From the sequence record OR620964.1: a stretch of DNA of 64,000 nucleotides; one strand, written 5' to 3'. A program made the translations under genes and the position numbers. This document shows, in pieces, positions 55,589-64,000 of the stretch. The notes beneath the pieces were generated by a model. The model saw only the letters and a program-made list of their open reading frames with translations, had not been told where the DNA came from and did not search any database. Positions within the stretch are counted from its first letter, which is position 1. Every line of letters begins with the position of its first letter.

Positions 55589-57514
55589 ATGGGCATTCGC
55601 GTAGGACGAATGACGGACGTAGGTTTGACTAAGAAAGAAGATGCAAAGAAGCCAGTTGTTGGTAAAGCGACTGGCTCTGCCTCGTTACCTAGTGATATAG
55701 GTACAGCTATCCGTAGCCATAGTGCTCGTAGTCAAACACAAGTTCGTTCACAATCCAGCGGTCAGGCAATGAGTGGAGGTAACACGCAAATTGGTTCAAT
55801 CCCTCTTGATATCGACTTAGAGCCGATGATGGAAGGTATGGACTATGACGCAGACGACCGACAACTCTTCAACGTCTACCGTGACATCTATTTCTTTGAT
55901 CCTATTTGTGGTAGCTATGTCGATCTATTCTCAACGCTTCCATTCTCGGACGTAAGTTTCAGTGGAGCTAAAGATAGCATTCTGGAACCTTACTATGAAG
56001 TGAATGAGCGTCTTGGTCTGACAAGCTCGATGCCTAACATCACAACCGATATTCAGGTTACTGGTGCTTTCTGCGGCTCGATGCTATACAACAAAGATCG
56101 TAAGAAGTTCATCGACCTGATGACACACCGATATGATAACCTTGAAGTTACTCCGCTACCGTTTGTGTCACAAGATCCAGTATTTGAACTGCGAATCCCG
56201 CGTGAGATTAAGCAGGCATTTGCAAAAGATTCAAAACGTATCACAGCACTTAAGCAGGAGCTTGGGCCCGCATTTGTCGATAAGTTGATGAATGATACTA
56301 CGATGGAACTTGACCCAATAGGTACCATCTATATCCCACGTAAGACATTCAGCTTTGGTGAAGGTGTTTCTGTATTCCGCCGTGTACTTCCAATCTGGCT
56401 GATTGAGAAGAACCTGTATCGTGGTACATTGATAGAGTCTGGCCGTAGACAGCGTGGTATTCTTCATGCACAGCTCGGTGACGGTGATCAGTGGGAGCCT
56501 TCTCAAGAAGAAATGGACTTCATCACTGACCTGTTGTTATCTGCGGATAGTGACCCAATTGGTTCTATTATTACAACACGTCTGGGCGTTAATATCAGTG
56601 AGTTCCGTCAAGGCGGTGACTTCTGGAAGATAACAGATATCTGGGATCAGACAGCGCAATTTAAAATGCGAGCCATGGGTATTAGTGAAGCGTTCCTGAG
56701 TGGTGAAGCTAACTATGACTCTGGTGCTGCTGGACTGACTATCTTTGTCGAATCCATGAAAGCGTTCCGTGACCATCTGACACGTAAGGTATACTACGAG
56801 AAAGTATTCCCTGTTATTAGTCTGATGAATGGCTATGCCGTAGGGCGTAACGGTAAGATATCGAAACGTAGCGGCATGATGGATGGCGGCTTGAACGAAA
56901 TCATGCATAGACTGAACGATGGAAGTAAATTGTTTATTCCTAACGTGCATTGGTCTAAACAACTGCGTCCTGATGTTGATCAGTCTATGATGGAAAACTT
57001 GCGCGCCATGACAGAGCTAGGTGTTCCTGTTCCTTTACGGGCAATCGCCGCAGCAGGTGGATTTAACTTCGACCAATTGCTGATGGATCAGGATGAAGAT
57101 ATTGCTATGAAGCGTAAGCTGATGGCATATCGTAAGCGCCAGTTGGAAATGGAAAAAGAGTATGCTGTTTCTGAACCGGGTGCGGATGGCGAAGGTGATA
57201 GCTTTAGTTCTGTAAGCTCTATGTCTGGTCATAGCTCTCATGGTATTGGACAAGGGAGTTCTGTTCTTGGTAATATGAAACGACCTGGCTTGATTGGACG
57301 TGACTACGGTGAGCGCATGGAAGTCACCGGCATTACTAAGACTGGTAAGAAGAAATGGATTTACGACCAGAAGAATGCAAACGATAAAGCTAACGTAGAG
57401 ATATACAAAGCTGCCGCGAATTATGAGCGCAATCGCACACTACCTTTAGATACAGGCGTTGTGTCTAAGAAAGCGACTATGGCAGAACTGAGTGCTATGC
57501 GGAAAATGCGATAA
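55589..57514 (+). CDS. probable portal protein
   Basis: 641 aa, two genes after terL, helical/beta content consistent with a portal; call mainly positional. Confidence 0.55.
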   Translation: MGIRVGRMTDVGLTKKEDAKKPVVGKATGSASLPSDIGTAIRSHSARSQTQVRSQSSGQAMSGGNTQIGSIPLDIDLEPMMEGMDYDADDRQLFNVYRDIYFFDPICGSYVDLFSTLPFSDVSFSGAKDSILEPYYEVNERLGLTSSMPNITTDIQVTGAFCGSMLYNKDRKKFIDLMTHRYDNLEVTPLPFVSQDPVFELRIPREIKQAFAKDSKRITALKQELGPAFVDKLMNDTTMELDPIGTIYIPRKTFSFGEGVSVFRRVLPIWLIEKNLYRGTLIESGRRQRGILHAQLGDGDQWEPSQEEMDFITDLLLSADSDPIGSIITTRLGVNISEFRQGGDFWKITDIWDQTAQFKMRAMGISEAFLSGEANYDSGAAGLTIFVESMKAFRDHLTRKVYYEKVFPVISLMNGYAVGRNGKISKRSGMMDGGLNEIMHRLNDGSKLFIPNVHWSKQLRPDVDQSMMENLRAMTELGVPVPLRAIAAAGGFNFDQLLMDQDEDIAMKRKLMAYRKRQLEMEKEYAVSEPGADGEGDSFSSVSSMSGHSSHGIGQGSSVLGNMKRPGLIGRDYGERMEVTGITKTGKKKWIYDQKNANDKANVEIYKAAANYERNRTLPLDTGVVSKKATMAELSAMRKMR

Positions 57515-57846
57515 TGTTTACATACCGTCGTAAAATAGAGGGCGACGCCACGCGCGTCGTTTACTCTCATCCTGTTCACAAGGACTATGGTGTTGCTTTT
57601 TCCATAGCTGAATCTCGTGACCAGATAACCTGCCTGATAGTCAATGGGAGCATTGACGGCCATACACCACTTATTCCGGTGACTGACTTATCAGCACCAC
57701 TTGTGGTACTGGCTTGGGCAGCACAAGTGATATTAGTTATTGAGAATAATACTGTAAATGAAGAGAGTATAGACATAGAGAATCTTATCACACATCATGG
57801 TGGTAAGTTCGTATATGCTCGTTCTTTACCTAACGTGGGAGAGTAA
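57514..57846 (+). CDS. hypothetical protein
   Basis: TAATG overlap. Confidence 0.7.
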   Translation: MFTYRRKIEGDATRVVYSHPVHKDYGVAFSIAESRDQITCLIVNGSIDGHTPLIPVTDLSAPLVVLAWAAQVILVIENNTVNEESIDIENLITHHGGKFVYARSLPNVGE

Positions 57847-57848
57847 CT

Positions 57849-58223
57849 GTGAGTGGACTGTTTCAGCATAGCACTATTGAGTATAAGCCTGGTTTCGTAT
57901 TTATTGTAGCACCTTCTGATTTTACGTCAGAAGACGCTATCGCCGCTGCGGCGTCTGTATCTGACTTGCTTGCTGAGTCTTGGCCGTCAGCACCTTCACA
58001 GCTCACTGTTGAAGAATGCCGGGATGAAGAATCCGCAGAACTAATCCTGTTTGACGCAAATCAAATTCTGGAAGAAGCCGAAGATCCAATGGCAGACTGC
58101 TTGGTTATCTCAAGCGTTACAGTCATCGGCGATATGTGTTTGGTGCAGTGTTCCCTGAATGAAGAAGGTGACGACGCAGACACCGAAGACGAAGAAGAAG
58201 ACGAAGATGCCGACTGGGAGTAA
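57849..58223 (+). CDS. acidic hypothetical protein
   Basis: GGAG RBS, GTG start. Confidence 0.7.
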   Translation: MSGLFQHSTIEYKPGFVFIVAPSDFTSEDAIAAAASVSDLLAESWPSAPSQLTVEECRDEESAELILFDANQILEEAEDPMADCLVISSVTVIGDMCLVQCSLNEEGDDADTEDEEEDEDADWE

Positions 58224-58294
58224 TCCTAGTCTAGACTCGGGGTGCGCTACGTGCCCCGGTCATTCCTGATTCTTATGCCATCAAAGGTGCTACG

Positions 58295-58762
58295 ATGGAA
58301 GAAACTGATAATGTAAGGCGACACCGTATATTCTATGGTAGAGTGCCGAAAAGCGTGCCTCCTTTCGATAGTGCTTTTGTCTGCTCTGGAAACAAAGCTG
58401 GCCTAAAGTTACTTCTCGCTGCTGCTCCAGAAAACTGCTCCATTGCAGTATTCTCGGATGGCACTCGCGCCGCTTACGCACTCAGCCTTCTCTATAAGCG
58501 AAAATTCAAACTACATGCTTTATCAATAGAAGTTATTTGTTCTGACCTGTCATACACTGGTCGTGTTATTTGGCTGTTCACTCGTGGCACATCTGAATTC
58601 AGGCTTAGTCCTTTATTCATCCGTGGTGATAGCATGTTGCATGAGCTATCAATCACTAAGGGCGATGTGATCGATATGTTCTGTCTTGGCCCGAATTTTC
58701 ATAAGATAATGGTTGAGCGCAATAAGACAGAAAACAGATCACTTGTATTTGCAGAGGAATAG
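58295..58762 (+). CDS. hypothetical protein
   Basis: AAGG RBS. Confidence 0.65.
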   Translation: MEETDNVRRHRIFYGRVPKSVPPFDSAFVCSGNKAGLKLLLAAAPENCSIAVFSDGTRAAYALSLLYKRKFKLHALSIEVICSDLSYTGRVIWLFTRGTSEFRLSPLFIRGDSMLHELSITKGDVIDMFCLGPNFHKIMVERNKTENRSLVFAEE

Positions 58763-59764
58763 ATGCGCTCGTTTGATACCAAGCCAAAGAAAAAGAAGAA
58801 AGGTGATGATACGCCTACTCTTCATATTGTTGATGGTTCTAACTGGATGTGTCGTGCTTATTTTGCAACACAACATGCAGTACCCTATCTAACCGCTCCT
58901 GATGGAACACCAACAGGAGGCATAAAGCAATTTCTTAATATGGTTGAAACTCTCTACGCGCAGACGATAAGAGAAGAGACAGGTAGCTTCATTGCTATTT
59001 GTTTTGACCCAAGCTCGTCTGATACGTGGCGGTACAGAGCCATACAACAATGGGTAGGAGAGAACAGTAAGAAGTTTGTACGTGCTGTGTACGTTAAGTC
59101 GGCTGACTATAAAGGCAATCGTGACCGCACAAAGACCTCAGACCTTCCAATTCAAATGGAATTATCCAGAAAGATTTTGGATAAAGCAGGGTTCTGGATC
59201 TGCGTAAAAGCTCCATACGAAGCCGATGATGTAGTTGGAACCTTGAGCCATAGATTCAGCAATATGGGATACAAGGTTAAGCTGTACTCCCGTGATAAGG
59301 ACTATGTACAGCTTGTTGATAATCCCAACGTTGAGCTGATTATGCAGAAGCAGGCGAATGCTCCTGAGCGACGCTTCACGCACAAGAATGTCGAAGAGTT
59401 TGTTGGAGTACCTGCTAACAGAATCACTCATTATCTGGCACTTGCTGGTGATAATGCGGATAACGTTCCCGGCGTACCTGGCATTGCTGATGGATACGCA
59501 GCCAAGTTTATTCGTGAGTATGGATCGATAAAGAAATTCTGTTTGGCAGCAAAGACAATTAAGTCTACCGCTAAGTGGAAGAAAGCACTCACAGGAGAAT
59601 TGCCTATGATGGACTTGGCACTTCAATTGGAGTTGGTTACTATTGATAGAAATGTACCTGGTCTGCCAAAAGAACTAGAGGCATTTCGTGTAAAAGAATC
59701 TGACGATAAGTATCTCAAGAAGATGAAAAAACGTCTGGCTCTTCGTTCTATATTTCATATCTAG
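58763..59764 (+). CDS. 5'-3' exonuclease / flap endonuclease (Pol I N-terminal / RNase H T4-like family)
   Basis: IVDGSNW..RAYFA, YKGNR, YEADDVVGTL, SRDKDYVQL, LAGDNADNVPGVPGI. Confidence 0.95.
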   Translation: MRSFDTKPKKKKKGDDTPTLHIVDGSNWMCRAYFATQHAVPYLTAPDGTPTGGIKQFLNMVETLYAQTIREETGSFIAICFDPSSSDTWRYRAIQQWVGENSKKFVRAVYVKSADYKGNRDRTKTSDLPIQMELSRKILDKAGFWICVKAPYEADDVVGTLSHRFSNMGYKVKLYSRDKDYVQLVDNPNVELIMQKQANAPERRFTHKNVEEFVGVPANRITHYLALAGDNADNVPGVPGIADGYAAKFIREYGSIKKFCLAAKTIKSTAKWKKALTGELPMMDLALQLELVTIDRNVPGLPKELEAFRVKESDDKYLKKMKKRLALRSIFHI

Positions 59765-59773
59765 GAGTTAGTT

Positions 59774-60322
59774 GTGACAGAATCTAATGCGGATACTGCA
59801 TGGGAACAGAAGTACCAACACGATGTGGAGCACGGGAATATTAATCCACAGTTAGTTAAGCATCTGATTGCTTGGAAAGATGCTGCCAGAGTTGCACTGC
59901 GCTTAGGTAAAGAACCTTTCTCTCCCATTGGGTTTCGTCTTGCTTTAACTTATGCGGGCTGCCCACAGCCAGTGAGAGCACAGATGTTTGAGGACATTAA
60001 GCAGACGATGCCTTCAATTGATATGTTCTACAAACGGTTCAACACAGATATCTATCCTAACTCTAAGATTGATAACACGTTGATGATTGTCCTAGGCTGC
60101 AACTACTTGGTGCCTGGCGATTTGATTATGATGGGATCATTCTGCATAATGAATGGCATTGGTACTCTTGACCAGTTCATTTCATATGCGGGTGAGGGTA
60201 TGCCATCGCGTGAGTCTCTGTCTACCTTATGGGACCTACAGAAGTATAATGGTAATGCTCTGGATGATATCAAAACTGTAAATTCAATATATGAATACAA
60301 TCAATTTGACAGGAGAGTATAA
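59774..60322 (+). CDS. hypothetical protein
   Basis: AGGAG RBS, GTG start. Confidence 0.7.
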   Translation: MTESNADTAWEQKYQHDVEHGNINPQLVKHLIAWKDAARVALRLGKEPFSPIGFRLALTYAGCPQPVRAQMFEDIKQTMPSIDMFYKRFNTDIYPNSKIDNTLMIVLGCNYLVPGDLIMMGSFCIMNGIGTLDQFISYAGEGMPSRESLSTLWDLQKYNGNALDDIKTVNSIYEYNQFDRRV

Positions 60323-60906
60323 TGGAATTTCCTGCTAGCATTCAAATCAAGGAACACAAGGTACTCCTTGTGCATAAAGGGAATTTGATTAATGATTTTA
60401 TGCGCGGCAAATTCTCAGTTGTTGGTATTGAATGTAACTCCCGTGGTGCATATGGCAGCCCGTTACAAAAGCACATCGCTGCTATCTTCCCACAGATGTT
60501 GACACAGCTTGCAGAGCTTACGTATGATCGTAAGCTACTAGGTACTGCGAATATATTCCGTGTACCTTCTCGTGGTAATGCAAGGCAGTATGTTGCAAAC
60601 ATGTTCTTGGCTTCCGGTTATGGACTCGGCCGTGATTCCAAGAATAGAGGCACCAAGCCTGTTAACCGATTCAGTGAGCGCTTCCTGCGTAACGCAATGG
60701 AGCAAGTTCTAGAGTCGTGTGATAAATATAAACTACCTGTAGATCGCCAGATAGCAATTCAGCGAGTATACGGTGGACTCGGGGGAGTGTCGTGGGCAGA
60801 AGTACAGACAGTGCTTGATGATATTTGTGATAAGCATAAGTTTAGTCTTTACGCCTACCTCCCAACTACGTATGATACTCAATTTGTACGCGGGACAACT
60901 CGCTAA
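60322..60906 (+). CDS. macrodomain-like protein (Poa1p/DarG type), divergent
   Basis: CNSRGAYGSPLQKHIAAIFP and IQRVYGGLGGVSWAEVQTVL match macrodomain motifs. Confidence 0.65.
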   Translation: MEFPASIQIKEHKVLLVHKGNLINDFMRGKFSVVGIECNSRGAYGSPLQKHIAAIFPQMLTQLAELTYDRKLLGTANIFRVPSRGNARQYVANMFLASGYGLGRDSKNRGTKPVNRFSERFLRNAMEQVLESCDKYKLPVDRQIAIQRVYGGLGGVSWAEVQTVLDDICDKHKFSLYAYLPTTYDTQFVRGTTR

Positions 60907-60923
60907 GTACACGGGATGAAGTT

Positions 60924-61247
60924 ATGAGAGCGATTCGTGGCTTTGATTTTATATATTATGGGGATGGCACTAACGACGGTCAGCAATTAATTGACGTACT
61001 TGACTTAGACCAAGATGCGAAGACCATCCGGCTAACGTTCTTTGCCGGAAATACTTCTACTGTTATTCGTGCGTTGCAGCAGAATTCGGTAATATATACA
61101 CAAGCAGAAAGTGGCCTGTATGAAATGAAGTACAAATGCGGGTTCAAAAATCTGGATGCAACGGCTGTACCAGAACTTTCTTCGGTGACATTACGATTGG
61201 TAGAAGCTAAGTTCTATCAAGGTGTCACAAACATAGATTATCAATAG
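60924..61247 (+). CDS. hypothetical protein
   Basis: 107-aa ORF. Confidence 0.65.
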   Translation: MRAIRGFDFIYYGDGTNDGQQLIDVLDLDQDAKTIRLTFFAGNTSTVIRALQQNSVIYTQAESGLYEMKYKCGFKNLDATAVPELSSVTLRLVEAKFYQGVTNIDYQ

Positions 61248-61258
61248 GACAATTAATT

Positions 61259-61942
61259 ATGTATTCCGCAAAAGAGATAGAGAGTAAGCTGGCAAAGATA
61301 GACTATAACTTCTATTCACGGCCTAGCGAAGCATTGCTTGATGAAGTATTCCGTGATGGTAAGAGTCGTGTTCTTGCCTCAGGTAACACGACACGCTTGT
61401 GTAAGTTATCTGATACCTATTTCGATTTCTGTTGGGCACAGGTAGCACAGTTCTGTGTCAGTTCGTACAACGCTGTTGAGATCGCGTTTATGGTAGGCAT
61501 TCAACCTATCTATGTTGCTGCATACATCAATCGCTATGGGTCTGACTGGTCAGTTAAGTTATTCCAGCGTAAAGGCATTTCAGAAATTTGCCGTGACGAA
61601 TATTCGGTTGTGCAGACCAAAGACTTGTTCTGGTCTGTCTATGCAATCCAGCAACGTCTTGTTCCACGCACTGCGCTTGTTACTGAGGCACAGAAACGAA
61701 TGCATGGACTGCTTTGCCAAAAACGTTACAGTGAATTCCAAGCTGCGGCATCACATACGCATACCATGCTTATTTCACTTGTCACAAATGATCGCCAGGC
61801 TATCTTTAATGACCCTCGTGTGAATAAGAAGACAAAGGCCGAAGAAAAACAATCAGACCCAGATCTGGTTCGTATTCGTCCTGTTGTCATTCCAGCACAA
61901 TCGGATCGCCCTGCATTCAATGCGCATCTAAGACAATATTGA
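61259..61942 (+). CDS. hypothetical protein
   Basis: AGGA RBS. Confidence 0.75.
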   Translation: MYSAKEIESKLAKIDYNFYSRPSEALLDEVFRDGKSRVLASGNTTRLCKLSDTYFDFCWAQVAQFCVSSYNAVEIAFMVGIQPIYVAAYINRYGSDWSVKLFQRKGISEICRDEYSVVQTKDLFWSVYAIQQRLVPRTALVTEAQKRMHGLLCQKRYSEFQAAASHTHTMLISLVTNDRQAIFNDPRVNKKTKAEEKQSDPDLVRIRPVVIPAQSDRPAFNAHLRQY

Positions 61943-61957
61943 TAAATAAGGTAATCA

Positions 61958-62725
61958 ATGAACGTAGATAAAACAATGCCTTCAGGCAAGTGGGAATTTG
62001 ATGAACCAGTAGCTGCCGTATTCGATAACATGCTGGCCAACTCGATTCCATCGTATGACCGTATGCGTGACCTGACGTTTCGCTTGGGTAAACGTTTCGT
62101 AACACCTGGTTCAACTATTGTTGATCTTGGTGCATCACTAGGCCGTGCTATTGAACCGTTCTGTGAGTATTTCGGTCCGTACATGTATATTCATGCGGCA
62201 GATAGACCTGAGCCAGACCGAGAGATAGGCAATCATTACAGCCTGTATGAAACAGCACCTGCAATGCGTGAGCGTCTTGCGAAGAATGACGTGTTGAATG
62301 CGGCAGATGCAAAACTTGAATCCGAATCTCTTGTGGACGTTGATACGTTTCGTTTTAGTGAGCAGGTTGAATGCTCACTGATCCTGTCCGTGCTAACACT
62401 ACAGTTTACGCCTATCGAACATCGCCAACATATTCTGGAAAAGGTCTATGACTCTCTCCAGACAGGTGGTGCATTCATTCTTGTTGAAAAGGTTCTTGGC
62501 GACGATAACTATCTGGACAAGCTGTTGGTAGATACTTACTATCAGATGAAAGGTGGTAACGGGTACTCGCAAGAATCCATTGCTACCAAGCGTAAGTCGC
62601 TAGAAGGTGTTCTGGTTCCTGTTAAGGCAGCGTGGAATGAAGAACTATTACGCAAGGCAGGATTTAGCCGCGTTGAATGCTTCTACCGAGATCTTAACTT
62701 CGCTGGATGGATCGCGATCAAGTAA
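61958..62725 (+). CDS. cmoA: CmoA-like carboxy-S-adenosylmethionine synthase / SAM-dependent methyltransferase
   Basis: WEFDEPVAAVFDNML..SIPSY, VDLGASLG, LTLQF, GGAFILVEK, IATKRKSLEGV, LRKAGF...LNF; collinear with recalled E. coli CmoA. Confidence 0.8.
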   Translation: MNVDKTMPSGKWEFDEPVAAVFDNMLANSIPSYDRMRDLTFRLGKRFVTPGSTIVDLGASLGRAIEPFCEYFGPYMYIHAADRPEPDREIGNHYSLYETAPAMRERLAKNDVLNAADAKLESESLVDVDTFRFSEQVECSLILSVLTLQFTPIEHRQHILEKVYDSLQTGGAFILVEKVLGDDNYLDKLLVDTYYQMKGGNGYSQESIATKRKSLEGVLVPVKAAWNEELLRKAGFSRVECFYRDLNFAGWIAIK

Positions 62726-62777
62726 TGCATGTGGGCTGCCTTCGGGTTGCCCTATCTACTATATAAGGAGTATTATT

Positions 62778-63632
62778 GTGTCTAAGGCACTGGCGATTTC
62801 TAAAGTAATCAGACGCACATTGGTGAGCACGTTTAAGAACGCGAAAACAGAACGTCCGTTCGTGTTCCTGTCCAGCGGCGCTGATAGTAACTGTCTTTTG
62901 TTCGCTGCGCTTGAGGCAGGCAAGCAACCAGTTACACTATCATTTCATATGGAAGGTACTATTAGTCGTGACTTCCGTCAGGCGCAAGCAACTGCCAAAC
63001 TGTTTAACGTACCGTTCATTGAAGTTGTATTACCTACCAACGTCGAGACACTCAAGAAAGAGTGCATACTATTAGCCAAGAAATACGGATGTCGTAGTAA
63101 GTCTGACTTCGAATGTGTCTGGCCTATGTACCACGCGTTCCGTGCTGTTGCGAAATATGCAAAGAAACACAAGATTGCTTCACCTACAATCTACACAGGT
63201 CATGCGGCTGATATATACTACGTTCTTTCCAAGAAAGGTAACATGCATTATAAAGATCGCCCAGACGATTATCGCAATGAGCGCTTTGTAGATCCTAAAC
63301 TATCACAGAGACACATACTGCCTTCGATTGCTTCTGACCTTGAAATTTCTAATGAAATACCATGGGTCGATAAGAAAATCTTGAAATCATTCCAAGGTGC
63401 TTCTATCGCTGACGTCAATAAGCCTCGTCAGAAAGAGCCGTCACGTCTAGCCTTTGATAGTTATTTCTCCCAAACGAAAGTCTATCAACATACGAATTTC
63501 CAACTCGGTGATAGCGGCATTTCGAAACATTTTGAAGTATTGTTGTCAGATCCTGAATGGAATCCCGACAACAAGTTTCGTGCTGTCATCGGTGTGTACA
63601 ACGAACTCTGCCGAAGACTCGGAGTGGCGTAA
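62778..63632 (+). CDS. asparagine-synthetase C-terminal-like ATP pyrophosphatase / amide ligase (no glutaminase domain)
   Basis: PP-loop FLSSGADSN, TGHAAD (cf. SGEGAD), PWVD; AAGGAG RBS before GTG at 62778. Confidence 0.7.
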   Translation: MSKALAISKVIRRTLVSTFKNAKTERPFVFLSSGADSNCLLFAALEAGKQPVTLSFHMEGTISRDFRQAQATAKLFNVPFIEVVLPTNVETLKKECILLAKKYGCRSKSDFECVWPMYHAFRAVAKYAKKHKIASPTIYTGHAADIYYVLSKKGNMHYKDRPDDYRNERFVDPKLSQRHILPSIASDLEISNEIPWVDKKILKSFQGASIADVNKPRQKEPSRLAFDSYFSQTKVYQHTNFQLGDSGISKHFEVLLSDPEWNPDNKFRAVIGVYNELCRRLGVA

Positions 63633-64000
63633 TGATTCGCGTATTTGATTCCGGCGCAGGAGGAGCATACGTATCGGAGTTGCTTACTGCGCACGGAGTA
63701 CATAACAAACTAAGCATGTTCCCTAACATGTTCCCGTTTGGTACTAAGACAGCCGACCAGTTACTTAGCTTATTTCATGATTATCGGAATAGTGTTACTG
63801 GTACTGTTTTCTGTGCTTGTAACACTATGAGTCTTGTGCTTAACTCCAATGGGTACGACTTTACCTCATGTGATGTTATTCCTACATTTCCTAATCTGTC
63901 TCCTGATGCGCCAGTTTGCTACGGCACAAAGAATACAGTTTGTCTGGCTCAGATACTGTCACCTAACCTTAGAGTTCGTGCCGTGCCTAATCTTGTTTCT
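63632..64000 (+). CDS. glutamate racemase (MurI)-like protein, truncated by the window end
   Basis: TAATG overlap; MIRVFDSGAGG, FPFGTKT, CACNT read by hand; not in the ORF track. Confidence 0.75.
   Translation, partial: MIRVFDSGAGGAYVSELLTAHGVHNKLSMFPNMFPFGTKTADQLLSLFHDYRNSVTGTVFCACNTMSLVLNSNGYDFTSCDVIPTFPNLSPDAPVCYGTKNTVCLAQILSPNLRVRAVPNLVS

Follow-up and report, generated by a model that had tools for sequence, protein, structure and literature searches.

Gene content of the locus

We analysed a stretch of 64,000 nucleotides (nt) from sequence record OR620964.1, hereafter the window, whose final ~2 kb carries three genes on the + strand, cmoA, cmoY and rac, that may form part of a pathway for cytosine hypermodification. 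Over its final 3 kb, the window matches at 100% identity the record OR620964.1 of Yersinia phage fHe-Yen9-02, a jumbo phage of 248,678 bp with Y. enterocolitica O:9 as its host. Record positions equal window positions plus 124,000, and the annotation and sequence of the record covered the flanks on both sides of the locus, amounting to 124.7 kb of the genome. An earlier note on this DNA had described three neighbouring, co-oriented enzyme genes, the last two of them coupled by the motif TAATG. Both observations hold when open reading frames (ORFs) and annotation are checked, as ORF3 (rac) starts at 63632 and thereby overlaps the stop codon of ORF2 (cmoY). The features are as follows.

61958..62725, + strand: cmoA (ORF1, fHeYen902_252), predicted CmoA-type synthase of carboxy-S-adenosylmethionine (Cx-SAM), 255 amino acids (aa), recognised by profile, structure and residue matches
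62733..62752, + strand: GC-rich stem-loop with complementary arms and a TTCG loop, in the 52-nt spacer between cmoA and cmoY
62778..63632, + strand: cmoY (ORF2, fHeYen902_253), predicted CmoY-type ATP-dependent amide ligase, 284 aa, recognised by homology to SpCmoY of phage S-B43 and by AlphaFold2 (AF2) and Foldseek
63632..64000 (running on to window-equivalent 64204), + strand: rac (ORF3, fHeYen902_254), first 123 of 190 codons, predicted compact MurI-fold protein, recognised by AF2/Foldseek and profile
record 188220-188855 (window-equivalent 64220-64855): RacL (fHeYen902_255), 211 aa, recognised by hhalign to Rac
record 199503-201581 (window-equivalent 75503-77581): CmoX homologue (fHeYen902_275), 692 aa, recognised by PF00145 and structure 8YF3

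A CmoA-type synthase and a glutaminase-free ligase

In Synechococcus phage S-B43, the enzymes CmoA, CmoX and CmoY make 5-glycyl-carboxymethylcytosine (Yang et al., Nat Commun 2025, PMC12783734). The precedent that the earlier note had mentioned, Cx-SAM-dependent cytosine carboxymethylation in a phage with subsequent amidation, thus exists. SpCmoA, the synthase of this system, has been shown to make Cx-SAM with high activity (PMC12783734), and ORF1 is 29% identical to it in a full-length alignment (expect value, E, 1e-21). ORF1 furthermore matches the CmoA structures of E. coli (4GEK, E 5e-30) and H. influenzae (1IM8, E 1.5e-28) as well as the family phrog_4752 (E 3e-80), and shares 42% identity with its homologue in phage PaBG. 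The residues of CmoA that contact Cx-SAM, including Arg199, which forms a salt bridge to the carboxylate, have been listed by Byrne et al. (PMC3663124). When aligned with 4GEK and 1IM8, Y33, D56, G58 and S60 of ORF1 coincide with CmoA Tyr39, Asp62, Gly64 and Ser66, and D129, F150, E177 and the arginine of KRK with Asp117, Phe137, Glu164 and Arg199. The stretch 'IATKRKSLE', whose K-R pair had been noted among the retained CmoA motifs, indeed aligns with 'SQKRSMLE' of E. coli, the site of Arg199.

ORF2 conserves, as do its homologues, the PP-loop S32-x-G34-x-D36-S37 (SxGxDS), and aligns over 87% of its length, at 31% identity, with SpCmoY, the S-B43 protein annotated as 'asparagine synthase' (E 6e-23 / 3e-27). 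It also matches phrog_26038 (E 5e-68), and the asparagine synthase domain PF00733 is detected in ORF2 homologues at 43-54% identity. An AF2 model of the protein reached a predicted local distance difference test score (pLDDT) of 91.3, and its top 19 Foldseek matches are the synthetase halves of beta-lactam synthetase, AsnB, human ASNS and carbapenam synthetase, with query TM-scores (TMq) of 0.62-0.72. As these targets measure ~500 aa against 284 aa in the query, ORF2 lacks the N-terminal glutaminase domain. Motifs and structural comparison are hence in accord with the initial description of an AsnB-type synthetase PP-loop (SSGADS, TGHAAD) without a glutaminase domain. On the strength of the SpCmoY homology, the PF00733 homologues and the modelled fold, we predict that ORF2 is an AsnB-family ligase of the CmoY type.

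A CmoX-type transferase with a predicted intein

Within the window, no DNA methyltransferase is annotated in the stretches whose annotation was read (1-49000 and 56000-64000). The earlier note had likewise seen no transferase, had guessed that one might lie past 64000, and had suggested looking downstream for a protein with the C5-cytosine methyltransferase fold. Such a gene is found 11.5 kb beyond the window. Its product, fHeYen902_275, has a C5-cytosine methylase domain (PF00145, E 4e-36) that is split by matches to Hint/intein families, and its best match in the Protein Data Bank (PDB) is 8YF3, the structure of SpCmoX with Cx-SAM (E 7e-52), compared with E 3e-16 for M.HaeIII. Yang et al. 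define candidate CmoX proteins by an SPPC motif together with Arg350, which in SpCmoX binds the carboxymethyl group and has Asn304 as its counterpart in M.HhaI (PMC12783734). Both hallmarks are kept: 'LLDGSPPC' aligns with 'ILDGSPPC' of SpCmoX, and 'ERLGRVCVP' aligns with 'ERVGRMVPP' of 8YF3, the arginine of which is residue 350 by counting the alignment. Directly upstream of cmoX lies a ParB-like gene, an association that has been reported for many CmoX contigs (PMC12783734).

The insert in CmoX comprises 349 aa, starts with a cysteine (CFTEE...) right after GSPP and ends with ...VVHN before 'CKGFSS'. Its sequence contains a Cys1, a block B TPEH, and a C-terminal HN followed by a +1 cysteine, as would be expected of an intein; Pfam gives weak matches, under the gathering scores, to the families Intein_splicing (E 5e-6) and Hint_2 (E 8e-5). 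Given its borders, GSPP and CKGFS, splicing would recreate the sequence GSPPCKGFS. A predicted intein occupies the same CmoX site in 48/48 Erwinia and 2/2 Dickeya jumbo-phage records, where it is more diverged (35-53% identity) than the extein (68-75%), and it is missing from the CmoX proteins of PaBG and S-B43.

Co-occurrence of the core genes

Homologues of CmoY are present in 58 phage records and those of CmoX in 59, and the two sets are essentially the same, consisting of 48 Erwinia, 2 Dickeya, 2 PaBG and 3 Synechococcus phage records and fHe-Yen9-02. CmoX and CmoA share one genome in fHe-Yen9-02 and 50+ relatives, and cmoA, cmoX and cmoY stand together in every relative inspected. Their order varies: parB-cmoX-cmoA-x-cmoY in PaBG, cmoA-cmoY-cmoX in S-B43, and two blocks, cmoA-cmoY and parB-cmoX, 13-18 kb apart in the Erwinia/Yersinia group. 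The existence of a partner transferase and the co-occurrence of the genes, two points on which the earlier note had made its reading depend, are thus both observed. The homologies of CmoA, CmoY and CmoX and their co-occurrence lend computational support to its proposal that Cx-SAM would provide a carboxymethyl group for a DNA base, which the ligase would then amidate. Judged by homology to the characterised S-B43 system, we consider the succession of steps from CmoA through CmoX to CmoY quite probable.

A different role for the CmoA homologue could be the modification of the tRNA wobble position to uridine-5-oxyacetic acid (cmo5U) by way of the CmoB enzyme of the host, in which case the ligase and MurI-like genes would be unrelated neighbours. 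The supply of Cx-SAM to CmoB is the only function of CmoA that has long been known, and a gamma-proteobacterial host should have CmoB; the GenBank label of the gene reads 'tRNA methyltransferase', and tRNA genes occur in this phage group, for example in PaBG. However, the 124.7 kb of genome read contain no gene annotated as CmoB-like, every relative has cmoA next to a CmoY homologue, and the same genomes encode a CmoX with the Cx-SAM-binding arginine. Moreover, the three genes are contiguous in PaBG and S-B43, and for S-B43 the function in DNA has been shown experimentally (PMC12783734). We regard the tRNA role as very improbable.

Rac, a compact MurI-fold protein coupled to the ligase

The third gene encodes Rac, whose AF2 model, built from a 13-sequence alignment, has a pLDDT of 95.3 and a predicted TM-score (pTM) of 0.90. 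Glutamate racemases take all of the top 36 places among its Foldseek matches (probability 1.0, TMq ~0.66), with aspartate racemases next, and the Rac family profile matches E. coli MurI (2JFN) with E 2.6e-7; a Pfam search with the 190-aa protein returned no match. The MurI motifs DSG.GG and ACNT, first noticed in the part within the window, were recovered as DSGAGG and CACNT, and the fold of the full protein adds to them. For H. pylori MurI, PMC6927343 gives two catalytic sets, D7, S8, C70 and T72 as well as E150, C181, T182 and H183. The N-terminal set is complete in the Rac family, with D6, S7, C63 and T65 invariant. The C-terminal set is incomplete: E126, T155 and H156 are present, and the cysteine is replaced by Ser154, so that the second catalytic motif, GCTH, reads GSTH in Rac, beyond the window end. 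Rac also keeps N64 and the substrate-loop motifs P(Y/F)G-K and TxxT (T99, T102), with Phe for Tyr in PYG. Because of the serine in place of the second catalytic cysteine, we refrain from classing ORF3 as a glutamate racemase; from its sequence and model, Rac is a MurI-derived compact family with only putative racemase activity.

The family is rare. A search of 5.8 billion proteins brought up its close members in 13 clusters (90% identity), and only three representatives below E 1e-30 were found among 1.84 billion proteins. A tblastn search of 50,697 phage records gave no match beyond Rac itself, no relative of Rac turned up in a pattern-based IMG/VR scan, and a metagenome scan yielded one weak partial match (L008). 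An exhaustive profile search added four short, distant relatives at ~25% identity, of which P0032, P0038 and P0073 have both cysteines and P0033 has serine.

Where Rac occurs, it accompanies the ligase. In 12/12 loci, made up of the close family (L001, which is fHe-Yen9-02, L005-L007 and L009-L012) and the four distant members, its gene follows immediately on that of a CmoY homologue, overlapping or abutting it. Six close relatives viewed in context have rac immediately after cmoY, usually with overlapping stop and start codons, and each of the four distant relatives stands directly behind a CmoY homologue. Identities within the close family amount to 81-83% for CmoY over its full length, 68-80% for CmoA and 47-56% for Rac; the pairing persists across a range in which ligase identity falls to 31-54%. 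Four ligase residues, A143, I146, G154 and T239, are invariant in Rac-linked ligases and are never found in Rac-less ones, which makes them candidate specificity determinants of the enzyme.

Rac could alternatively be a host-takeover factor that acts apart from DNA modification, either on the D-glutamate (D-Glu) pool and peptidoglycan or as an inhibitor of DNA gyrase. Some bacterial MurI proteins have been reported as DNA gyrase inhibitors, Rac has the MurI fold, and phages do carry auxiliary metabolic genes. Such a role is hard to reconcile with the strict coupling to CmoY in all 12 loci, across very divergent sequences and usually with overlapping stop and start codons, or with the extreme rarity of the family otherwise (13 clusters in 5.8 billion proteins, 0/50,696 other phage records), and we give it very little credence.

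A variable slot between cmoA and RacL

Rac is followed by RacL, a full-length degenerate paralogue (hhalign probability 97.4%, E 1e-11) in which CACNT has become SSTSA, GSTH has become GSSN and the GG of DSGxGG is gone. Judging from these losses, RacL is probably a pseudo-enzyme. All Erwinia-type relatives inspected, with or without Rac, have it behind the ligase cassette, and the content of the slot between cmoA and RacL differs between phages, as listed here with CmoY identities to fHe-Yen9-02.

fHe-Yen9-02 and four metagenomic relatives: CmoY and Rac (CmoY 81-93% in the relatives)
pEa_SNUABM_5: CmoY only (53%)
Y3: CmoY and a 2-oxoglutarate (2OG)-Fe(II) oxygenase (33%)
pEa_SNUABM_23 (Alexandravirus): a 420-aa protein, a DUF1611 member, an alanine-racemase-like protein and a CmoY-like ligase (25%)

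Relative to fHe-Yen9-02, CmoA and CmoY are 93.7% and 32.6% identical in Y3, and 84.6% and 24.7% identical in pEa_SNUABM_23. The identity of CmoA is thus uncoupled from that of CmoY, which indicates cassette exchange. In pEa_SNUABM_23 (L015 2034-6131, corresponding to MZ443772.1 13033-17130), the 420-aa protein has no detectable family and the DUF1611 member is a P-loop protein. The alanine-racemase-like protein of this slot matches PF01168 (E 4e-14), contains the pyridoxal phosphate (PLP)-lysine motif 'VKGNFYGHG' and has alanine racemases as all of its best PDB matches; the adjoining ligase (PF00733, E 7e-16) is 34% identical to SpCmoY, compared with 25% to the fHe-Yen9-02 ligase. This arrangement suggests a different adduct, possibly with D-Ala, and the presence of a second, non-homologous racemase family beside the ligase provides independent support for the D-amino-acid theme. 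In Y3, the oxygenase behind CmoY (PF13640, E 1.6e-15; L014 3595-4233, corresponding to KY984068.1 14594-15232) may further oxidise the adduct. The PaBG proteins located after the ligase or between cmoA and cmoY have no detectable relation to Rac or RacL.

Another variant was seen in a contig of the Logan assembly SRR29340318 (L016 305-4731), where a distant ligase/MurI-like pair with both cysteines stands behind a PF00291 enzyme, and where two proteins with weak N6/N4-methylase-like and thymidylate-synthase-like matches precede the pair. It may represent a different base-modification route built on the same ligase module.

Proposed pathway and its standing

The pathway that we propose starts with CmoA, which would convert S-adenosylmethionine (SAM) and prephenate into Cx-SAM. 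Spliced CmoX would then transfer the carboxymethyl group to C5 of cytosines in the phage DNA, and CmoY would adenylate the carboxylate of the resulting 5-carboxymethylcytosine and join it to an amine as an amide; homology guides the assignment of all three of these steps. Gene linkage and active-site conservation suggest that the amine would be an alpha-amino dicarboxylic acid, most likely glutamate, which we favour because Rac retains the MurI substrate motifs. The translationally coupled Rac would supply this amine or set its stereochemistry. D-Glu is the leading candidate, since the many cytosines of a genome would presumably need far more of it than the peptidoglycan pool of the host supplies. 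The product, 5-(glutamyl-carboxymethyl)cytosine, would shield the DNA against host nucleases. Flanked by the conserved cmoA and RacL, ligase and accessory enzyme would make up a swappable cassette, by which related jumbo phages would differ in the decoration of their DNA. We assign this reading as a whole, a CmoA/CmoX/CmoY-type cytosine hypermodification with a Rac-set glutamate amine and a swappable cassette, a probability of roughly 0.55. That Rac supplies or fixes the amino acid is a step which we infer from linkage and active-site conservation.

Several observations weigh against this reading. The CmoA homologue scores below the cut-offs of both TIGR00740 (144.9 bits vs 193.3, E 3e-42) and NF011995 (107.7 vs 285); an insertion of ~16-20 aa after strand 2 (residues ~84-100) splits the TIGR00740 match and accounts for the sub-threshold score. 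CmoA Asn90 and Asn132 are not kept in ORF1 in the alignment with 4GEK and 1IM8, and Asn132 is likewise missing from the active SpCmoA, on reading two alignments. For the ligase, Pfam gave with ORF2 alone only a weak QueC/PP-loop match and no Asn_synthase PF00733, and a PDB sequence search matched no solved structure. CmoX cannot be active unspliced, because its catalytic cysteine is the +1 residue of the putative intein, and its activity would therefore be conditional on the predicted splicing. No CmoA or CmoX gene was seen in the retrieved flanks of L005/L006, L011 and L016, which extend over 10 kb on each side for L005 and over only 2.7-4.2 kb upstream for L006, L011 and L016. Among the upstream genes of these loci, the PLP-dependent enzyme PF00291 in L016 is the only Pfam match above gathering, with weak sub-threshold matches to N6_N4 methyltransferase-like and thymidylate synthase-like families. 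The ligase/Rac pair may hence not be restricted to Cx-SAM chemistry: in these genomes CmoA and CmoX may be encoded elsewhere, or the pair may serve other carboxylated bases. Rac measures 190 aa, compared with 255-290 aa in MurI, and lacks the C-terminal ~70 residues; its 123 window-encoded residues score 18.2 bits against TIGR00067, whose cut-off is 146.65. The identity of the amine, too, we infer, and a search of the literature found no paper on DNA modification in fHe-Yen9-02.

The most weighty of the competing explanations accepts carboxymethylation and amidation and holds that Rac, with Cys63 as its only thiol base and Ser154 opposite, is not a racemase of free amino acids. Rac could instead serve the ligase as a subunit that binds the amino acid or confers specificity without catalysis of its own, act as a one-base enzyme for stereoselective protonation or decarboxylation in the manner of arylmalonate decarboxylase (AMDase), or be an epimerase acting on the DNA-attached amino-acid amide. 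Ser154 replaces the second catalytic cysteine in 13/13 close family members, and a Cys-to-Ser exchange in the canonical MurI of Lactobacillus led to a ~1000-fold loss of activity (Glavas and Tanner 1999, as cited in PMC6927343), both of which also count against the pathway as proposed. RacL is conserved though nearly all of its catalytic motifs are lost, so that non-catalytic roles for the MurI fold do exist in these phages, and the tight translational coupling suggests a stoichiometric complex with the ligase. On the other hand, D6, S7, PFG, C63, N64, T65, T99, T102, E126, T155 and H156 are invariant, and the invariance of these other catalytic and substrate-contact positions would be unexpected for a pseudo-enzyme. 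Both cysteines are present in P0032, P0038 and P0073, distant members of the compact clade that are likewise paired with a ligase gene, and in Alexandravirus the corresponding slot holds a bona fide racemase of an unrelated family. We consider a Rac that does not racemise free amino acids unlikely, although this alternative deserves serious attention.

The suggestion of the earlier note that the ligase might use a racemase-made D-amino acid accordingly stands in part: the strict pairing in 12/12 loci and the alanine-racemase-like gene beside the Alexandravirus ligase speak for it, whereas the serine in place of the second catalytic cysteine speaks against it. Only tentatively do we put forward the more specific proposal that the compact MurI-derived family, mostly with a Cys/Ser active site, is an obligate partner of CmoY which installs D-glutamate or another D-amino acid on 5-carboxymethylcytosine from a swappable slot.

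Ligase start, spacer and neighbouring genes

The most likely start codon of ORF2 is GTG at 62778, behind AGGAG, where the N-termini of all homologues match; cmoY thus begins 52 nt downstream of cmoA. Two other starts, at 62607 (mechanical ORF list) and 62637 (GenBank), were set aside, as the homologues all start at the equivalent of 62778. The GenBank start lies 141 nt upstream of this GTG and would make ORF2 overlap cmoA by 89 nt.

The spacer contains the stem-loop GGGCTGCC-TTCG-GGTTGCCC, followed by AGGAG and the GTG start. Four relatives have a stem-loop at the same spacer position, with arms that differ in sequence and are mutually complementary. The single-sequence fold of the hairpin is no better than that of shuffled sequences (z = -0.18). 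It is not a classical terminator, as a T-run is lacking, and no sigma-70 promoter or terminator signal rose above the shuffled background.

The GenBank labels of fHeYen902_252 ('tRNA methyltransferase') and fHeYen902_275 ('hypothetical protein') look outdated. Between the two halves of the pathway lie genes for a dCMP deaminase and a Dam-like N6-adenine methylase. The thymidylate synthase homologue (record 195529-196626; L001 15530-16627) is unusually long at 365 aa, and its Pfam match is stretched over residues 24-363 for a model of 266 positions. A related metagenomic phage (L017 5833-7896) has a 687-aa version, in which the match is split in two. This 687-aa version may contain insertions or another intein.

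Comparison with known systems

The CmoA/CmoX/CmoY core described here is a further member of the system already published by Yang et al. 2025. It resembles that of S-B43 in its Cx-SAM synthase, in a transferase of the C5-methyltransferase fold with SPPC and the Arg350 equivalent, in a glutaminase-less AsnB-type ligase, and in the ParB-like neighbour of CmoX noted in PMC12783734; the proteins of the two phages are 29-31% identical, with up to 56% identity in the N-terminal part of CmoX. Unlike in S-B43, the genes of fHe-Yen9-02 are split, with cmoA-cmoY ~13 kb from parB-cmoX, CmoX carries a predicted 349-aa intein at its catalytic cysteine, and the ligase, a member of another subgroup, is coupled to Rac, with RacL as a further addition. 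As this ligase differs from that of S-B43 and is coupled to Rac, its amine is probably not glycine. Yang et al. note that CmoA occurs widely among phages and that the amine is probably a different one in other ligase clusters; the word 'racemase' occurs 0 times in their paper, and Rac and RacL are not described there (PMC12783734).

With the bacterial CmoA/CmoB system for tRNA cmo5U34, the locus shares the CmoA fold, the SAM-contact residues and Arg199. It differs from that system in that no CmoB was seen in the part of the genome read, in that the synthase scores below the equivalog cut-off, and in that its partners are predicted DNA-modification enzymes. Rac resembles MurI in its two-domain fold and in the aligned motifs DSGxGG, P(Y/F)G-K, ACNT, TxxT, E and (C/S)TH, and the arrangement as a whole recalls the relation of MurI to MurD, as a racemase-like gene stands beside an ATP-dependent amide ligase that would use its product. 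In contrast to MurI and MurD, however, Rac has 190 aa and a serine for the second cysteine, and its partner is a ligase of the AsnB type rather than the Mur-ligase type. AMDase is a one-cysteine member of the Asp/Glu racemase superfamily that keeps the C-terminal cysteine and is without the N-terminal one. Rac also retains one of the two superfamily cysteines, but unlike AMDase it keeps the N-terminal one, and with it the MurI-specific substrate motifs.

Phage thymidine hypermodifications with amino acids include N-alpha-glycinylthymidine and alpha-glutamylthymine. These are reportedly covered by Lee et al. 2021, a paper that Yang et al. cite. The proposed pathway is similar to them in that an amino acid would be added post-replicatively to a substituent at C5 of a pyrimidine, and in the cassette-like diversity among related phages. 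Whereas the thymidine systems employ 5-hydroxymethyl-deoxyuridine and a kinase, fHe-Yen9-02 would use a Cx-SAM-derived carboxylate on cytosine and adenylation.

Compared with PMC12783734 and the literature searched, the obligate ligase/compact-MurI module, RacL, the alanine-racemase and oxygenase cassettes and the predicted CmoX intein are new. So far, the only natural system for 5-carboxymethylcytosine to have been characterised is one with a glycine adduct. The locus of fHe-Yen9-02 predicts glutamate, possibly in the D-form, as the amine, with a nucleoside of [M+H]+ ~415.15, and the Alexandravirus relatives predict alanine as a second one, with [M+H]+ ~357.14. If the proposed D-amino-acid reading is true, this would be the first DNA base to carry a D-amino acid, extending the chemistry of DNA to D-amino-acid conjugates and adding a new functional branch to the MurI superfamily. 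It would also mean that phages vary the camouflage of their DNA by swapping a cassette of ligase plus substrate supply, and an amino-acid-specific DNA ligase/donor pair of this kind could be useful for site-specific functionalisation of DNA.

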